Assembly (NCBI GenBank): GCA_907165135.1
Contig: OU015566.1
Coordinates: 1,302,001 to 1,366,000, forward strand
Reading direction: 5' to 3'
DNA from: Oikopleura dioica
Taxonomy: Eukaryota; Animalia; Chordata
Length of the DNA stretch: 64,000 nucleotides
In this document: positions 2,360 through 63,850 of the stretch, one piece after another
Layout: each line of letters opens with the position of its first letter
Numbering within the stretch: the first letter of the stretch is position 1
The notes under the pieces: model-generated
Databases searched by the model: none
What the model saw: the letters and a program-made list of their open reading frames with translations, nothing else
What the model was told of the DNA's origin: nothing
Position numbers and translations under genes: made by a program

Positions 2360-4704
2360 AAATTACCTGATTCGGATGGATCAAGAGAAGCAATTCTGAA
2401 AACGTCGTCCTGCTCATCTGGAGAATTGATCGAAACCAAATTTGCTCCTTGTCCTTCGCAAAATGATTGAGCTGCCTTCCACCCTTATTTTTTCATGAGA
2501 AAGGTCATTAAGAAAATGCTCACCCTTCTGATCAGAAGTACTCATGATGCACTTTTGCGAGCTTTCCAAAAACGTCCATCCGAAATCGCATTCTTCATGC
2601 GGCAGCGCTGTTGGCACAGTATTTGGATTTTTAGTCGTCGAAACTTGCACTGCTGGCTGCATGCAGATCGGATATCGTTTTTCAGCACAGTTGAATGCTC
2701 TCCAGAGCCCAGCCATTTCATGATTATCCAGGCCGGCAGCAAGTTCGACGCAAAACTTGTACGGATTATTTTCTGGCTCTCCATCGGCAAAGTTTTTGTA
2801 GCTCACGCTCGTTCCGGAATCCCAATCAATGGGCTGGCCGCCTGCATATGGCAATCCCAGCCCAAGCCAGCTCGATGCGAGTTGATGCTTGACGATGAAT
2901 GCATTTTCCTCGTCGTTGAAAATTTCAACGAGTCTTGATCCGAGACTTTCGCAAAACTCGGCCGCCTCGTATTTTGTCAAATAAGTCGTGTTGCCGTTGT
3001 AGTACTTTGAAAAACTGTAGCACATGCCATTTTGCTCGTTCAAAAATGTCGTCATGTGCCAATCGTCGGATTTGATACATGTCAAATTTGAAGTTGGAGC
3101 TTCCGTCGGTCGAAGTTGAGCAGGAGCATCCATGAAACAGCCAAAAGCTTCAGTAGTCGAGCAACTTTCGGCCATCCAGTTGTCCGAAGTTTTCAAGACA
3201 TCGAGATACGCGCAGGTGTGAGAGTTGACATTGCATTTTGGCTGATCATCCGCCCAGTAAGTAAAGCTCGGGTTGGAGTTGAAATCTGAATATTGCAGTC
3301 GACAGTCTCGTACTGGATCTTGCAGCGGCATTTCATCGTGAATGTTTGACAGATCCAGCCACATTCGCGTGACTCCTGCTTCCGCCCACTCATGTTGATA
3401 CTGTGCGAAGATGTCTGCTTCCGCTTGGCTTTCGATTCTGATCTGTTGAGCTCCGAAGCTCTCGCAATATTTTTTCGCTTCATACCAAGGAAGGTGATAA
3501 TTGCCATTGAGGAAGAATTTGTAGCATTTATTTCCAACATGACTGTCTCCTTTGTCCTTTATCTTCTGAAAGGTCCATCCTTCTGGGCAAGTTTGACCGA
3601 CTGGTTTTTGGCAAATGACTGATTTCGGTTCATTACACCATCGAGCAGACCAAACAGCAGAACTGGTATCCTCAGCTCCCGGCTCAAAGCTAGCACAAGT
3701 CGCGGCAGGTGTTTGATCCAACTGACTATCTGGCGCGCCGTATTCCCAGTTGAGATAACCAGAACTATACTCCCCGGAGATCCAGGAAAAACGATCGGGC
3801 TGGTTTTGTGGGGCATTCAAATTGTTCAACCCGATCCAGGCGCCTTTGTAAGTCACAGAATCGCCCCAAGAATTGATCGCTTCTTTGAGTTTCTCAGCGA
3901 TAAACTTATTTTCTTGCTCGTTTTTGATCGTGACCAAATCGCCGAAATAATTGTTCCCGAGGCCTCCTTGACAGTAGCTCTGGCCGAGTTCGAATTGTCG
4001 CTGAGTTGTTGGCTTGGGAAAGATGATACAGGATGGTTCACCGGTTCCGACGTCCATTTTGAACCAATTATCGCCACGGCAGTCGGCGACGCATTGAGTA
4101 CTTTTGGCTTTGCAGATGAAGCTGAAGAAAGGAGTTGAAAACAGCGTGGAAAGATCATTTTACCTGGCAGTCTTGGTACATTCATTTTTGACCCAAAGGC
4201 CTTCCCCATCCCAAGGCATTGGAAAATCAGGGAGGTTTTCCGTGAAAAGTGCAAAAGTACACCTCTTGGACTGGTCCGAGTTATTTTCCATTCCCGGCGC
4301 CCAGTTTTTGTAATTATACGGTTTCGTAACATCTCCGTTTTGGTTGGTGTTGACCCATTCTAGCGTGTTGAACTGTTTGAGATTATTGAGCCCAATCCAG
4401 TAGTTTCGGAATCCTCGGTCTTTCCATTTCAGCGTATCGTAAATCAGGCGCATCTCGTTTTCGCTGTGAAAATCGACAAGATCAGCGCCAAAAGTGTTAC
4501 AGTGAGATTGAGCAGCATTCCAGCTCTTTTCCGGAACTCCATCGATTCCCCCTTGAAAAAGAAATCACCAAAAATCTCCCTTGAAAAATTACCTTCAAAG
4601 GTCTTGTAAGAATTGTCACCGATGACGATCCAGTCTGACGGACAAGGCTCAGCATTTGAAGCAATAAAAAGCGTATTTATTACAATCAGTCTTGTGACTA
4701 CCAT
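2360..4704 (-). CDS. Multi-CTLD mannose-receptor-like secreted lectin (4 complete CTLDs plus a partial fifth); 3' end uncertain
   Basis: Signal MVVTRLIVINTLFIASNA. Repeated CPxxW/CY, WIGLNN, NWAPG and WxxxxC motifs in ORFs 4160-4453 and 2414-4057. Confidence 0.9.
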
Positions 4705-54688: not shown

Positions 54689-55175
54689 GATTTCGTATCT
54701 CTTGTGACTTGAAATGAACCCCAAACGACCTCTTTCTCGGCAGTTTACGATCATCAGCGGTCATTGTTTAGCTTAAAAGCTTTGTCATAAAAATCATCAT
54801 AATGAAATTTTATTGGGTTAACCAATGTTTATGATGTGGCTCTTCTGCAGACTCAAGTATGGTTGAAATCATGGGAGATTTTGGCGAGAATTTTTATATA
54901 ACTTTTGTTTCAATTTTTGTTCTTTGCAAACTTTTCCGCGAAAGTGCCTTGTCAGTCAAATGCGGGCCGCGATCGGAAACATTAGAAACGCAAGTGGCAT
55001 TCATCTTTGTTGTTGTTTCATAATCAATCTGACCAAAAGTGCTTAGTGATGGGAACCTCGCTAGAAAATCGGCGGTTTCGTGACCTTTTCCGTTTTTCTA
55101 TTTAACCCTCTTTTGCATCAGAAAAGACATCTCACTCAGAGACTCTCGAGGAAAAATAACTACTCCTACAAAAAG

Positions 55176-56530
55176 ATGAAATTGTCAAATACTCTTTTTG
55201 CAGTCGCTCTTGCACAGTATGATTACGACGGATTTGACTATTTAGCGACTTCAACCGGAGATGTTCAAACAACTCCAATTTCAATCGACCCTAATGTAAG
55301 TTTTTTTCTGATATTTTTCTGATATTAAAGAGACGAGTTAGCTAGAATCGATTTTATCGCCGGAAATTGCCAAGAAAACTTGAAAATAGCGCTCAAATCG
55401 CTGATTTACGGCTTCTTTTTAGTCATTGAGCGCGCTCAATTTCGACCTGAGTGAAGACCTAGGCCCCGAATCATCCGAAATCCTCTCCGTTCTCGCATCC
55501 ATCTCCGGAAACGACGCTCCTCAAGGTCCGAGAGGAGGATCACTCGGTCGATCCCAAGGATTTGATCCTCGGCGAGTTCCACCAGGGTTCAACATTTATG
55601 ACTACGTCGTCAATGGACAGCTTGATGTCCAGGCATTTCGAGCTGGTCTTTTGGCGGCGATTCAAGCTCAGAGAGAAGCAGAATTGGCTGAAGAAACAAC
55701 CACTACTGGCACCACAACTACCACTTCAACAACAACTACAACAACAACATCGACAACATCGACAACGACGACGACAACTACTCGAAGCACTACAACTCCT
55801 CCTCCATCGCTTTCCTTCGAAGATCTCCTCAGCCAAGTCGATCTTTCCAACAGCCAAGCCGGCAGTCTACCAGACGCCTTCAATTTCGAGGACGACGCAG
55901 CTGCAGAAAAAGCCTTCGGAAATCGACCAAATATTCTCCCTGAAGCGGCTGAGAAAAACTTCGTCGTTCAAATTCCTCAAACTTACTGCCCAAAATGCGA
56001 TGGCGTCGACTACGCGTCTTGCAGCGCTAGTACTTACGAAGCTTGCAATAATGCTCAGAGGTTCGATAATATAATCAATCTTCGTATTATGAAAATTCTA
56101 GCGCTTGTTTGGTCCAATATCGATATGTAAACGGCGCTCCACTCTACTGGTCCGGCTGCAAGTCTGAACAACCCTGCATTACTCAACAAGACGAAAACTT
56201 CCTCGGCGGCGCTAAAATTCGTAAGCTCTCTTTATCCCATTCTCTTCATAATTTTTTTGAAAGATGACAAATGCAAATCCAATCGATTTCCCTCTCGCTG
56301 GCTGAACGGAGCAGAATGTGCTTTTTGCCTACCAGCTGGTGATCCACTCAGCAACGACTATTTCCAAAGCGGCGGAAATGTTTATAAAACAGCAGTTATC
56401 AGGCTAGGGTTTTACTTTCCTCAGTACAATCCGTCGTTATACAAATTGAAAACCATAAATAAGCGCCGTCCTTTCTGATCCTGAACAATATTTGGACCCC
56501 GCTGCAGGAAGCTATCTCTTCAATCTCTAA
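55176..56530 (+). CDS. Secreted protein with a Thr-rich mucin linker and the same Cys domain as 33233-33749
   Basis: MKLSNTLFAVALAQ; TTTT tract; YCPKC...C...C...SACLVQYRYVNG...GCK...C...NFLGG...C...CAFC. Confidence 0.8.
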
Positions 56531-56775
56531 TGAAAATCCACTGCGAAAGAAACAGCGTAAGATTCTCGGAATCACTTACAATTTTACTGTAACAAAGAAC
56601 TTTTTAATAAAAATACAGCGAGGCAAAAAAAATCTGTCTCATTTCCGTCTGCGATAAATTAACTATACAATGCGGAGAGCGCGCAAATAGTGATAAGCCA
56701 CTTGAAAAAAACTTTTGTCACTTTTTGAGAAAGGTCACGATCAGTTTCTAGCGCTCAAGAATTCAAGAGAAAAAA

Positions 56776-57437
56776 ATGGGGGATCATATCGTTTTCCAGG
56801 ACAAATCTAAGTAAGAACGACAACAGGGCATTCTGAGAAGGTTAAACCCAGCTAACACTAATTCTAGAGAAGCTCGACCAACCCTAGATGCTCTCTTTAA
56901 CGACTCGAAGCTCGACGAAATGGCGCAGCTGATCATGCTCCAGCAGCAAAATCCACCAGAAGCTCAAGAAACTCGCGTCGGATTTTTCTACGAAGACACT
57001 TTTGAAGGGTTCGAATTCATCTTTCTCTTTTTCAAGTGACATTTTTTGCTTAGACCAAAGCCGAATTACATCAAACTGGAGCTGAAATTCAACGACGATC
57101 GAACTGAGTTTACTGGCAGCGGGTTTCATTTTGCGAACAACCAAGCTTTTGAAGTCGTAGAAGGAGCAGTTAATAAAAAGACAAAGTATTGGAAATTCAT
57201 TTGCGCGTATGAAAGTGGAAGAAAAAAGGCCACAGGAAGAAAAGAACTTGTTCAGGTAGAGATCAGAATCGACTTCAAATCACCTTTTGGTATGTTTAGT
57301 TCTGGGGCTGGTCGCATGGAAGAGTCTGGTGCGGCGGATACCACGAGCAGGGCCATGAATATCAAGATAAGAAGCTGCAGGCTTACGCGGAACAAGCTTT
57401 TATTTTCCCTGAACATGAATCTTTCGAATTTCATTGA
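56776..57437 (+). CDS. Hypothetical protein (about 4 exons)
   Basis: Consistent short introns; exons EARPTLDALFND..., PKPNYIKLELKF...ELVQ, FWGWSHGRVW...FEFH*; no family recognised. Confidence 0.5.
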
Positions 57438-57656
57438 ATAAAGTCAAAACCAAAAGAAAGAAAATCTTTATTTTTTTTAGTTCTAGAAAAGAAAATGTCG
57501 ATTCCACGGTTAGCAGTTATTTTTTACTTTTTAAATTGTTGTTTGTGCGTATTGTTTTGAACAGTTGAGGAAGCTTGAAGATGCAGAATTGAGAGAGAAA
57601 GAGTTCAGGAATAATTTATAAACAAGCCTAATAATAATCATTATCTTTCAAAATAA

Positions 57657-59970
57657 CTAAGTCCAGCCCGAAACGAGTCTGTTTTGCCGTTCCACCATGA
57701 ATCTTGAAAGCTCATTTCCCTGCATTGTCGATAATCTGCAGTAAGTGTCGTTTTCTTTTGCTTTTTGTAGCTTTGGGAGCGAGATCCAGTCTCCGGCCCA
57801 GTTCCTTGTTTTTAAGTTCTTTCAATTGTTCAATAAAATTTCAAATCTGAGCTGGACGAACAGTGCAGAAAACCTGAGTCAAATTTTGAAAAAGCTTAGA
57901 TGAAAAACCGCAGAGCGGCTTTTTTAAAAACGAAGCCGCGAATATATTTCTATTTCAAAATTTGATATAGGAGCTTTGCGGCTTCGTTAAAAAAAAGCCG
58001 CTACGCGGCTTTTCATTCAAGATCTGTGAGAACCTGACTCAGGTCTTTTACACAGGTTGCCTAGTCCAGTTTACAATTCTTTAATTTATAAGCTCGCAAT
58101 TTTTGCAAAATTGAAAAGCGCTTTCCTGAAGGGTCGGAAGCCATCTTGGCAGGCATCTGCAAGCTGCTCAGATTGATACTTTATCACATCAGCTCGACGT
58201 TGCACGATGTCTAGCCCTATCTCGTCTATTCTCGCCCAGAAGGTTCTGTTGAAATGCTCGTACAGCATAAAATCGGGATAGTTGATCACGCGCACCAATT
58301 CCTCGTGATACTCCTTCGCCTCTTGGCTGTGTTTTCTTCCGCTATTCATCGGCAAGTAGGCGAGCTCGGACGGCGGCCAGTTGAGCTCAAATGACAGAAG
58401 AGCCAGACCAAGATCGAAATATTCCATGATCAGGATTAGGTCAAAATGCCCGTGGATTTTCTCTTTACGAGGATCTTTTTCTTCTCTTCCTTGATTTCAA
58501 TTCGGAAAAGATCCCCCTTCCTATGTAAGCTTTGACAACGTCTCTATCCAAGTTCATCGTCGCCACTTCTGGTCCAAAGAAGCTCCACAGCTGAGGCCTC
58601 AGAAAGTGCCTTTTCCACATGGAAGGGTCCTGCAAGAGCATGGATTTTTTGTAGAAATCAACTGGGTCTGATAAAAGCTCGTAAAGAAAAGAAATGCGTT
58701 CTTTTTTTTTATTCTCCTTTTTGAAAAGCGAAGCGAAGATAGTACGAACTTGCTTTCATAGCGGATGAGTTATTTTAGAGTCTAAAATTTATACAGTCTC
58801 AGGAGGTTTAAAGAAAAGATAGAGAAGGCAATCTTTTTCGATTAAGGACACCCCTCTCCTCCCCCAGGAAAAAGCTGACGAGAGGGGGTCGTTAAAATGA
58901 GGTTTGACACAGGTTGTCATGTCCACATAAGTAAATTAGTACTATTGTTAGTAAAGAATTTCTCCGCTTTCCTTATCCCCCATGTTTGGTTTGAAGTAGT
59001 ACTTCCACGTGCTGGTCATGTGAGTGGAAGGGTGTCTCAAAATCGAGATCTTCTTTGCCGTTGGAAGATACTCGTCCGCGAATGTGAAATTGTACGTCAT
59101 ATGATTAGCGACGAAATCATATTGTTTTGACTTCTTCTGCCAGCCAATAATTCCAAGTCCGTCAGGATTCAATGGCTCAGCTAAATCCGCCTCCCCGCGA
59201 GGAAACAAATGCGCTAAAGATGCAATCAGCCCATGCCGAATCAAGTCGTATATCAATTCTCGTCTCTTTAAATTCAAGCACTTACATCCTTTATTTTGAC
59301 TTGTCAAAAGCATCGACTTATTGTGAGTGTAGCAGTAGCGGGAGAATATTGTTGCGAGCGTCGAACTGCCAGTTTTGTATGTTTTCAGGAAAAATACACT
59401 GTCGGCTTTTTCGGTGGTCAACTTCTTTAAGGGGGTAGAACTAGATTTTTCGAAAGTGAGTTATTTTCTGGGGCCACTTTAAATATTATTTACTTAAAAT
59501 AAAACCTGTTTTTACTTATGATAACGAAATTTCCTCAAAGATGTTGCTAGAAAAAGAGTTGAAATGTCTTAAAATGAAATTGGACATTCTTGGCTTATCA
59601 CGTGTCTCGAGATATTCGAGGTCTAAAATTGGGGGTCTGGCAATTTGGGTAGAAAGTTAGGATTTGAAATAAAATATTTGATCCTGACTCAGGTTTTCTA
59701 CACAGGTTGTCGAGCCTTCAATAAAGGATGTTTTTGTACTGGGGGTAATTATTGAATTAATTATAAAGTTCACTAAAACCACTTTCCTGGTTGGCTCGAC
59801 GAACTTTTTTGCGGCAATCTTTTCGAAGGAGCCTTTGCACGAGGAAATTCGTCGGTGATCCATTGAAAGTCGAGCGACAGCACTTCGTATTCTCTTATGT
59901 ACAACAAGAGCGATAAAAAGATGCAACAGGCCCAGGGAAGATATTTGTGGAAAAACTCCCACCTCCCCAT
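57657..59970 (-). CDS. Galactose-3-O-sulfotransferase family protein (GAL3ST-like)
   Basis: Type II anchor MGRWEFFHKYLPWACCIFLSLLLYI; FLKTYKTGSST; ANHMTY; SILRHP; EYFDLGL; NYPDFMLYEHFNRTFW. Confidence 0.9.
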
Positions 59971-60236
59971 CACTGAAATTTGACGATCTTTCAATTGCAT
60001 TTTAAATTTAATTTCTAGTTGCAATTTTCTACCGCAACTATTGCCCGAGGCAATATCGCTGTACGTTTTGTTTGGGACCAAAATAGCAGCCAAAATCAGT
60101 ATTGTTCCTTGAATAGGAATAAAGATCGAATAACTTTAAAGAAAACAAATTACATATTATAGAATATTAAAGAATAATTGAAGTGGGAATGCTCCGAAGC
60201 CGATTCGCGGCTAAATTAAAAAAAAAGCCGTTCGAT

Positions 60237-61220
60237 TTATTCATCTTTGTTCAGTGATTTCTTTGAGAAAGGGCAGCTTTTCAGGAAAGGGATGAAAGAT
60301 GGAGTCCTTTTCATGTATTCTTCGTAAGTTGGTCCGATTTCAGAGACCAAATCCGGCTCTTCCAAAAATTTGATCGCGAACTGAAACTCGACTGAAAATC
60401 ATTCATAAAAAAATTTTCAAACCAAAATGTAAGAAGCAATAAAAGCAGCGATGAAGACCCTTCCAGCGGTAAATTCAACGATCGAAAAGAGCATCATGAA
60501 GAAACCAGTCATAATCGGGTGCCGAACGAGTCGATAATGCAAAATCGTCACAAATCCATCAGGCACAAATTTGAGGAGATTCCCCATTCCAAGTCCTTGT
60601 CGGAGGCCGAAAAGCTCGAAATGGTCGATCGCAAATGTAGAACTGACAAGCCATAAAACGCCAATTACGTATCCTCCGATCATGAAATTTTTCAGCATTT
60701 CTGGAGGCTCGAAAAGAACAACAGGCATTGATTGCCAATTTTTCAGAGCCTGGTGGAGAAAGAAACCGGATTGGAAGCAGTAGATCGGTCTTTCAAGCTC
60801 CTAAAAGGGATAATGATCAAGAAATATGGTCAAAAATCGCACCTTGGGCAAGTTCAGAATCTGCTTGAAACCTGGTCTGGCAAAAAGAGAGTGGAAAAAC
60901 GCCCATAAGCCGAAGAAAAGAGCGTTGTTCATCATTTTGTCGCCTGTTTGACCAAAATTTGTTGATTCGTCATCTTAATTTTTTTTTCGAAGTTATGGCC
61001 TAACTTATCGATTAGAGGTAGTTACCGATTGAATAAGGGAAGATTACAGAAAGAGCCGGAGAGAATTTTTGAGCATTGATGAGGAAAAACGTGAAGGCAA
61101 ATATTGACCACAGGCCGTAAATATATCCAGCCAAAGCGACTTAAATTTTTATCAGTTGAGTTAAACATTTGAAGGGAAAAGCAGTTATTTATTACCTGGA
61201 ATACTGATTAGTCGAATCAT
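60237..61220 (-). CDS. MddA/nurim-family membrane methyltransferase (methanethiol S-methyltransferase-like)
   Basis: Spliced product contains YSID, FHSLFARPGFK, LERPIY, STFAIDHFELFGLRQ, YRLVRHPIMTGF and YIL-AIKFLEEPDLVSEIGPTYEEYMKRTPSFIP. Confidence 0.85.
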
Positions 61221-61704
61221 TCAATCAGTCTTCTGTAATTTTATTTTAGTCAGTTGTCACTTCTCTTGCCTGTGTAAATAATGGTGACTGAATAAGCACA
61301 AAGGTCGAGGGGAGTGTCAGGCTCTAGAAATACCTTAAGGGGTGGTGGTCAAAAATGAGACTTTTTTTGACAAAATTAGTGGGCGACATGGTCTGAAAAA
61401 AAATTTCCACGGAAAATTGTCGAAATTTATCGTCAAAGTGGAGCTGAAATCGCGTTTTTCGAAAATTTTGAGAATTTTTTTCGATTTTTGCTCCTTTTTG
61501 GCCAATTTTCGGGGCTTTCCTCCAATTTTCATTCATCTTTGTACGGATACACAATCACAATAACCAATTATTCCGACGTATCACTTTAATTCTTCCTCTT
61601 TACGAAGAACTCGCTCAAAATAATGCGCAAATAGTCAATCATGTGAATCGATCCATAGAATGAAAGTGCCTAAAAAGTGCTTCAAATGAAAATTGTGATC
61701 AGAA

Positions 61705-63850
61705 ATGATCTGGTTGATATTTCTTCTTTTCAGAGAATTTTCACTCGCTGGTCAAAATGGAGTCGATCCTGCTGCAGGCTTCAGATTTAAAAAGTTAAAC
61801 GACACGGTTCTCAAATGTCCAAAAGAAGCGACAAATGTGGAACCGTTTTTGTACGAAGGATACGACTACGCTTTCGTTGAAGGAGTCGATATCGCGCCAT
61901 ACAACATTCCAACATTTGATCGGCAGTGGAGAAAAGGACTTACTTGCTATTATGCGTCGAGCTTTCTGACAACTAATCAGTGAGTTTTTTGCATAAATAA
62001 ATTATATAAATAAATTCTTAAGACATCACAAAGCAGTTTGCGAAGAAGAAAAAAGCTTGGAAATAATCAATTATCGAGATCTCGATACAGACAGGGCTCA
62101 AATCAATTAGTAAAAGCCTGAGTCAGGTTTTGAACACAGGTTTTAACACAGGTTTCAACACAGGTTTTGAACACAGGTTTTGAACACAGGTTGTCAACAC
62201 AGGTTTTCAACACAGGTTTTAAAACAGGTTTTCAAAACAAGTTTAAACACAGGTTTTCGACACAGGTTTCAACAAAAGTTTTCAAAACAGGTTTCAATAC
62301 AGTTTTCAACACAGGTTTTGAACACAGGTTTTCAGCTAAGGTTTCAACACAGGTTTCAACACAGGTATCAACACAGGATTTCAACACAGTTCTATGAAAC
62401 AACTTCGTTTGCGATCGTTTTTTGAGCCCTTTTAGCCGGAGCTGTTCTTTGGCAAGTTCGAAATTCGATGGATTTAGCCGCCGACGACAGCAATATTTTT
62501 TTGGTACATGAATAAAAACAATCAGTTGCGGTACGCAGAAAATGGGGAGCGAGAAAAGGTCCCGAATTTTCTAACAAAAGCGATTTCGATCTGCAAATTG
62601 AACATGGCGAAACCGTTTTGGACGGAATGGCATTGGAGTAATGATGAACGGGGTATCTGCCCACCATGTGCGGAAAAACCTTATGACGGTGCAGGAATGG
62701 TTTTCGGCGAAATAAGAAAGAATTCAAGAAGAAAAATCGAAAACCTCATTTTCAGGAAATAGAAAAAACATGCTTTATAGATACAAAGTACGGACCTGTT
62801 CTCAACCAGGCGCTTGTATAGGCCTTGGTGAGAAAAAACACGAGTGCAATTATATTCCTATGTGCCGTAAGTAATTATAAACAATATTATTACTAATTTC
62901 TTGCCTTATTTTCAGCTCAACATAAGCCCTGGGAAGAATGGACTCAATGCAGTCCAAGCAAATTCGAAATTTCACAAAACGCCACTGCTCCTGCTACTTG
63001 GACGAGAACGAGAGTCAGACCGTGCAAAAAATGTAAGTTATTTTTTTTGAGAGAATTTTCCATGCTCAAATTGAACCATAGATTGCGACAATGGAAGACG
63101 ACAATTTGGAAAACTCCCAATTTACGAATTTGAACATCCAAATATCACGAAATTGACAGATATTGAAAACTGCACCGCAGGTTTGAAAAAAACTTTGACA
63201 AAAATATGGAGCAAAATTATGAAAAAAAAACAGGTTTTTCGGTCAAACAGACTGCAAGTTCAAACGAACATCGTGTTTTTTTATTGAAATGAGTAAGTAA
63301 CACGACAGATTAGCGTTACTGAATTATAAATTTGTTGCGAACTATCCGCTTAATATAATATGAATCTTCGAATGAAGTTCCATTCCCTCTCGATTGGAAA
63401 AAAGGCCGATGAAAAGAGCTTACACTCTGAATATCGAGGACAAGTTCACCGTAAGTTTATCGTTTTTTTTTAATTTTTTTTTAAATTTTTCTAGTACAAT
63501 GAAGAGCTAGAATTGGAGCGACTTTTCAATCAATACGAAGATTTTGGGAAACAAGAGATTCCGAGAATTGAATTGAGGGGAGAAAAAGAACACGATGCAA
63601 AAAGTGAAAATGGATTAAAACTGCTTATTATTTATAATCATTTGGGCAAGTTCCATCCATTCAAGAGCGGATATTTACTTAGTTGTCGGACTCGTTTTTG
63701 TGCTAATATTATTGCTTTTCATCATGATGATCTTGACGAATGCAGTAGTGGAATTGTTAGTTTTTCATCAAAAATACTGCATTATTCAACATATTCAGCT
63801 ACAAAGGACTTCAATCGACCAAAAACAAGGAGGAAAACCAGCGACTTTTA
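61705..63850 (+). CDS. Secreted protein with thrombospondin type-1-like repeats; exon chain and 3' end uncertain
   Basis: Signal MIWLIFLLFREFSLAG; FWTEWHW...CPPC...RTCSQPGACIG; WEEWTQCS...WTRTRVRPC. Confidence 0.6.
62115..62395. repeat. Minisatellite of ~12-13-bp AACACAGGTTTT(G) units in an intron
   Basis: About 20 degenerate copies. It begins right after a family-A-like cctgagtcaggtttt motif. Confidence 0.9.

Follow-up and report, generated by a model that had tools for sequence, protein, structure and literature searches.

Nurim is a protein of the animal inner nuclear membrane whose function in vertebrates has, to our knowledge, remained unknown since its discovery, and as far as we know the human protein is without an EE...Y..Y tail. 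The substrate of ICMT is the carboxylate of prenylated proteins, and its C-terminal region binds the SAM cofactor; we know of no solved structure for the MddA/nurim-type family. Nurim has been placed beside ICMT and PEMT among membrane-bound methyltransferase-like proteins, without demonstrated methyltransferase activity (PMC13137591). Bacteria, archaea and some algae are the organisms so far credited with forming dimethyl sulfide (DMS) by S-methylation of methanethiol or H2S (PMC13310141, PMC12904073), and MddA is known from bacteria, cyanobacteria and some marine algae (PMC12904073, PMC13310141). In animals, SAM-dependent methylation of H2S and thiols, the chemistry proposed below, is known for TMT1A/TMT1B (METTL7A/B; PMC12904073), but their fold, which is that of MddH, is unrelated (PMC12904073, PMC11445057), which makes them analogues, not relatives, of the protein described here. 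In the literature searched, we found no report of MddA in animals and no paper joining MddA with nurim, or Oikopleura with nurim.

Here we describe a gene from a 64,000-nucleotide stretch of DNA (the window) of the appendicularian tunicate Oikopleura dioica. Our overall reading, to which we give a probability of about 0.6, is that this is a genuine, expressed nuclear gene of O. dioica whose product belongs to the MddA/nurim branch within the ICMT-like, SAM-dependent integral-membrane methyltransferases, likely active and with small thiols as substrates. The predicted product crosses the membrane several times, through some five or six transmembrane helices, and the gene span coincides exactly with its coding sequence (Table 1). 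The N-terminus of the model can be aligned from residue 1 with P0298, the orthologue from a sister lineage of O. dioica. For exon 3, a start at 60943 (giving a 253-amino-acid product) was ruled out, as the spliced sister-lineage mRNA of P0298 has ten more residues between exons 2 and 3; a start at the upstream AG, at 60973, adds ten residues and restores the P-Y-x-I-D motif of the family. A sequence-only reading of this DNA had quoted four motifs and about four introns from a marine zooplankton animal, and each of these points was borne out: the motifs lie on the minus strand (HSLFARPGFK at residues 74–83, STFAIDHFELFGLRQ at 144–158, YRLVRHPIMTGF at 179–190 and EEPDL...YEEYMKRTPSFIP at 223–247), the model has four introns, all of them GT..AG, and the product is identical to a deposited O. 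dioica protein (CAG5102393.1). The AATAAA at the stop codon is a putative poly(A) signal, since it is the canonical eukaryotic one.

Table 1 Features of the gene and its surroundings, in window coordinates
Feature	Position	Strand	Details
Gene	60237..61220	-	coding sequence, ATG to stop; 5 exons, 4 introns; 263-aa product
Exon 1	61196..61220	-	ATG at 61220; residues 1–8 and first base of codon 9
Intron 1	61140..61195	-	56 nt, GT..AG; break also in sister-lineage genomic contigs L001–L003
Exon 2	61026..61139	-	first transmembrane helix, as far as P-Y-S-I
Intron 2	60974..61025	-	52 nt, GT..AG; acceptor set by P0298 mRNA and deposited protein
Exon 3	60843..60973	-	carries HSLFARPGFK (60864–60893)
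Intron 3	60801..60842	-	42 nt, GT..AG; in frame, stop codon at its end
Exon 4	60423..60800	-	126 codons; core with STFAIDHFELFGLRQ (60597–60641) and cofactor motif YRLVRHPIMTGF (60501–60536)
Intron 4	60381..60422	-	42 nt, GT..AG; in-frame stops inside; break at same place in L001–L003
Exon 5	60237..60380	-	EEPDL...G..Y..Y...P tail (60288–60362); TAA stop 60237–60239
AATAAA, putative poly(A) signal	60236..60241	-	overlaps stop codon; read from sequence
Stretch with acceptor-like site	61221..61240	-	A-T-T-A-C-A-G, 12 nt upstream of ATG
Galactose-3-O-sulfotransferase gene	58089..59421	-	multi-exon; PF06990, two ORF pieces
C-type lectin ORF	2414..4057	-	uninterrupted, 547 aa; three domains (PF00059, E 1.3e-29)
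Tandem array	62124..62389		13-nt unit (25-nt double unit), about 21 copies, 82% match

Spliced-leader trans-splicing is known in Oikopleura, and the acceptor-like site upstream of the ATG, together with the T-T-T-T-C-A-G that directly precedes the ATG of the Atlantic orthologue, may be a trans-splice acceptor; the contigs showed no leader sequence. The sulfotransferase gene is the immediate downstream neighbour, on the same strand and about 800 nt from the stop codon, and farther off in the window are a sulfatase fragment and others, besides the lectin ORF. The tandem array makes long spurious ORFs on both strands, and an Rfam search over the window found nothing. When positions 55000–63000 were compared with the Atlantic-lineage contig L001, the methyltransferase gene alone was shared and the flanks were unmatched, in agreement with the genome scrambling that has reportedly been published for O. 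dioica cryptic species.

The 263-residue model is identical, residue for residue, to P0390, which is NCBI CAG5102393.1 from the Okinawa assembly of O. dioica (Oidioi.mRNA.OKI2018_I69.chr1.g279.t1.cds; UniRef100_A0ABN7SL24), named "Nurim" in UniProt, and the locus lies on chromosome 1 of the Okinawa lineage. The gene is already deposited and automatically named; what is new is its reading, as a chordate member of the family that keeps every catalytic hallmark. UniProt gives the name "Nurim" to both O. dioica orthologues (CAG5102393.1 and CBY07019.1/E4WTR8) by an automatic, rule-based procedure, and a EukProt member of the same eukaryote-type clade (described below) is tagged KEGG K21310 mddA. 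One clade is "Nurim" for UniProt and "mddA" for KEGG-based pipelines, which is a lesson for annotation. A cluster look-up placed P0390 in the same 90% cluster as P0001, a 103-amino-acid ORF fragment that serves as representative and conceals the annotated protein, and statements drawn from representatives that a sequence has "no annotated relative" need a corresponding caveat.

Evidence for expression comes from the Atlantic lineage. The orthologue P0298 is a 263-amino-acid ORF on intron-free contigs of about 1 kb from six independent datasets, its 90% cluster includes the Atlantic O. dioica reference protein (CBY07019.1/E4WTR8_OIKDI), and in Atlantic genomic contigs from three datasets (L001–L003) the gene has breaks matching all four intron sites of the window gene. 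In this lineage the gene is both transcribed and spliced. The window protein and P0298 are 73% identical (191/261), with dN of 0.16 and dS of 1.54 (near saturation), and the resulting dN/dS of about 0.10 indicates strong purifying selection. A word search with exon 4, whose visible range was limited to proteins of 69–220 amino acids, found ORF fragments of more lineages in metagenomes, at 75–98% identity.

Among NCBIfam families, MddA (NF045656) was the sole strong match to the Oikopleura protein (E 1.4e-38, 132.6 bits; residues 12–247 against positions 5–238 of the 238-position profile), a likeness well beyond what chance would give, with exon 4 alone reaching E 5.6e-21; the runners-up were ICMT (26.2 bits, below the isoprenylcysteine methyltransferase cutoff of 160 bits) and LmtA (24 bits). 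The MddA score is nonetheless below the equivalog cutoff of 270 bits. On the same model, proteins named as bacterial MddA score 309–346 bits and eukaryote-type relatives 129–205 bits, the Oikopleura lineage being the lowest of the eukaryote-type clade (129–133 bits, versus 132–205 for its other members). Identity to bacterial MddA was 31–36.5% in alignments of about 180 residues or more with 28 proteins, a set made up of proteins named or matched as MddA; one local match reached 42%, over 111 residues only. Environmental MddA surveys use an identity limit of 40% (PMC6524544). The protein is thus MddA-like in architecture yet below the usual MddA limit in score (132.6 versus 270 bits) and, against the proteins compared, apparently also in identity (31–36% versus 40%). 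Pfam gave no match on four exon translations or on the orthologue P0298, and for relatives gave only sub-threshold matches to PEMT, NnrU and ICMT.

At the level of residues, the likeness to bacterial MddA runs from end to end. The proteins are of similar length and multi-pass membrane build and have in common H-S-x-x-A-R-P-x-x-K, S-T-F-x-x-(D/N)-H-F-x-L-F-G-L-x-Q, V-R-H-P-I-M and EE.DL...G..Y..Y...P, and the MddA motifs given in the sequence-only reading agree with aligned real bacterial MddA sequences (Formosa, Catelliglobosispora). In A4, an alignment of 50 eukaryote-type and bacterial MddA proteins, the Oikopleura protein keeps all 20 invariant columns (H74, K83, R94, W112, F146, H150, L153, G155, R183, H184, P185, M187, G189, I215, E223, E224, Y235, Y238, P243 and P247) and 37 of the 43 columns with at least 90% conservation; the other six carry the substitutions L to F, P to S, P to V, M to F, F to I and V to I. 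Retention of the C-terminal EE..L...G..Y..Y tail, to which that reading had pointed, was confirmed along with every invariant MddA residue. The differences are that the Oikopleura tail has EE-P, where bacterial sequences typically have EE-R or EE-K, and that the Oikopleura gene has four introns and belongs to a separate, eukaryote-type clade.

A profile of close relatives matched the Methanosarcina ICMT structure 4A2N (E 5.7e-5) in the C-terminal region, with R-H-P and EE..L...G..Y..Y aligned, and this cofactor-binding region of ICMT/Ste14 (4A2N, 5V7P) can be aligned with the Oikopleura protein, whose N-terminal two thirds cannot. An AlphaFold2 model of the 73%-identical orthologue (with A4 as input) shows with high confidence (pLDDT 92.5, pTM 0.88) a membrane protein built as a helical bundle, with long helices at 2–29, 56–78, 90–110, 124–147 and 202–231, which accords with the 4–6 helices reported for MddA (PMC11445057). 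Foldseek searches of this model against PDB and BFVD returned nothing with E below 0.09; near the top, at non-significant E between 0.1 and 1.4, were ICMT, steroid 5-alpha-reductase and sterol reductase. A single-sequence search of the PDB gave a chance match only.

To place the protein among its relatives, we combined profile searches with maximum-likelihood trees. An exhaustive HMMER search found 658 library relatives at E of 0.001 or less, and two profile word searches listed 120 matches each with source names. The nearest kin are eukaryote-type proteins (45–73% identity); the nearest full-length relatives (45–57%) come from Logan, JGI, ENA, Tara/MERC and EukProt, several of them on contigs with poly(A) tails, and below about 250 bits in the profile searches bacterial proteins named methanethiol S-methyltransferase fill the lists. 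Trees were built in a quick and a careful version, with 13 labelled bacterial loci added from genome contigs, and were treated as unrooted because the provisional outgroup was weak. The window protein and P0298 pair with 100/100 support on a long branch (0.65), inside a 7-member subclade (99/97) that is itself part of a 38-member clade (100/97; stem length 0.45) without any sequence of known bacterial origin. This larger clade includes poly(A) transcripts, EukProt and Tara/MERC entries, low-density eukaryote-like contigs and a giant-virus-like contig. The claim that the protein resembles bacterial MddA stands in part: MddA is by far the best family match (132.6 bits versus 26 for ICMT), but the nearest kin are eukaryote-type and not bacterial. 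A grouping with bacterial MddA in a phylogeny did not hold, as the window protein lies outside the bacterial radiation in the separate eukaryote-type clade, with rooting uncertain. The eukaryote-type MddA-like proteins (of marine protists, 'algal MddA' and giant viruses) are alike in clade membership, 38–48% identity, the EE-P-D-L tail and a P-Y-N-I-D N-terminal motif in common with Oikopleura; they differ in that the two O. dioica proteins are the only members known to be of animal origin.

Several members of this clade sit in informative surroundings. P0299 (L019:9001-9819; ENA ERZ24794639 NODE_18938) lies amid genes for TFIIS, RNase III, DSPc and a Mimivirus-type poly(A) polymerase, a gene set of giant-virus character. 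P0430, which belongs to the P0185 cluster and is closely related to P0299, is on a dense ORFan contig (L033:6950-7738); judging from these contigs, a gene for an MddA-like enzyme seems to be present in giant viruses that live on marine eukaryotes. P0048 and P0197 (L005:6001-6783 and L030:8001-8798; ENA ERZ25333236) form a distinct subclade found on gene-sparse contigs of 0.2–2.7 Mb with ankyrin, ion-channel and UbiA genes, and group with the EukProt transcript P0083 (prefix Rhum_; tagged K21310 mddA); these sequences may be from a diplonemid or another euglenozoan. Another clade member adjoins WD40 and zinc-finger genes. The P0296 gene (L031:442-1388; L032), whose product shares about 63% identity with the window protein in the exon 4 region, has introns after the first helix and after M-T-Q-G and none at the sites of window introns 2 and 3, so that intron positions have turned over within the subclade; a linker-histone H1-like ORF lies about 250 nt downstream of it.

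A rival account is that the protein is simply a tunicate nurim, with a structural role at the nuclear envelope or some other lipid or protein substrate and with MddA-like motifs that are ancestral and have no link to thiols. The UniProt name of both O. dioica orthologues fits this account, Oikopleura is a chordate, for which vertical descent of a nurim-family gene would be the simplest history, the protein misses the MddA score limit (132.6 versus 270 bits) and appears to fall short of the identity limit (31–36% versus 40%), and the families that it matches weakly after MddA (LmtA, ICMT and PEMT) methylate lipids or prenylcysteine. The name, however, is automatic, and the K21310 mddA tag stands on one EukProt protein of this clade. 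Moreover, no protein named nurim was among the 240 matches listed with source names in the two profile word searches, while many were named methanethiol S-methyltransferase; among the first 294 relatives, all tail-bearing sequences have EE[PRK].L and none looks nurim-like (107, mostly fragments, are without the tail motif). The strong purifying selection and the intact cofactor motif also appear to argue for catalysis. On balance, we regard a purely structural or thiol-unrelated nurim as rather unlikely. Part of that account is shared with our reading of an active methyltransferase, in that the Oikopleura protein and vertebrate nurim may be orthologues, the tunicate one having retained the ancestral catalytic motifs, as the UniProt name of both orthologues would suggest.

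The origin of the gene is a separate matter, in which the bacterial and eukaryotic alternatives fare very differently. In favour of a bacterial source, whether by a recent direct transfer or through contamination of the assembly, it can be said that the best named matches are bacterial MddA, but the gene has four spliceosomal introns and AATAAA at the stop, its neighbours are intron-bearing animal genes, its exon layout is repeated in three independent sister-lineage datasets with spliced mRNAs in existence, a 100/97 branch separates it from all bacterial sequences in the tree, and matches to bacterial promoters and terminators are not in excess. We rejected contamination and recent bacterial transfer on the introns, the neighbours and the tree, leaving them a negligible probability; recent bacterium-to-animal transfer is excluded because the Oikopleura protein falls in a eukaryote-type clade apart from bacteria. 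Old horizontal transfer to appendicularians from a marine protist, alga or giant virus, as opposed to inheritance from an animal ancestor, deserves more weight, although we still consider it rather unlikely. Apart from the two O. dioica proteins, clade members with a visible source or cluster are from environmental, Logan, EukProt and Tara collections, and none is from NCBI or UniRef; the diplonemid-like members and the two virus-like contigs (one with Mimivirus-type poly(A) polymerase, TFIIS and RNase III, the other a dense ORFan contig) point in the same direction. Against this, the other six members of the subclade, whose sources include Tara runs ERR1711990 and ERR1712130 and Logan SRR28369012 and SRR10393524, may be animals, cluster representatives can hide annotated members (as they did for CAG5102393.1), and scans of IMG/VR for viral copies found none. 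On the same side are the introns, the host-like composition (GC3 of 0.47) and the deep divergence between O. dioica lineages, which show long residence. The gene may have been inherited anciently within eukaryotes and lost elsewhere, or it may have been acquired long ago, the donor being another eukaryote or a giant virus.

Returning to the reading of the protein as an active methyltransferase, the intact RHP(I/M).G ... EE..L...G..Y..Y cofactor motif makes a working SAM-dependent enzyme the most likely prediction. The Oikopleura protein would probably bind SAM and methylate a small substrate at a membrane, with the endomembrane system (ER or nuclear envelope) as its predicted location. By homology with MddA, the substrate may be methanethiol and/or H2S and the product DMS (PMC5607357, PMC12904073), an assignment that we put forward tentatively and with clearly less confidence than the methyltransferase activity itself. 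Such methylation would detoxify thiols arising from ingested DMSP and methionine and would suit a filter feeder that eats algae rich in both. The most far-reaching version, in which O. dioica has a working methanethiol/H2S S-methyltransferase and makes DMS of animal origin, and in which vertebrate nurim is the catalytically degenerate descendant of this enzyme, we consider unlikely as a whole.

If thiol methylation by this protein is true, DMS would have a further source, an animal one, at the very place where DMSP-rich algae are eaten, and O. dioica is among the main grazers of the ocean. For the family, the lead concerns nurim: one label is shared by an Oikopleura protein with every catalytic hallmark and a vertebrate protein without known activity, and this combination suggests an ancestral enzymatic role.
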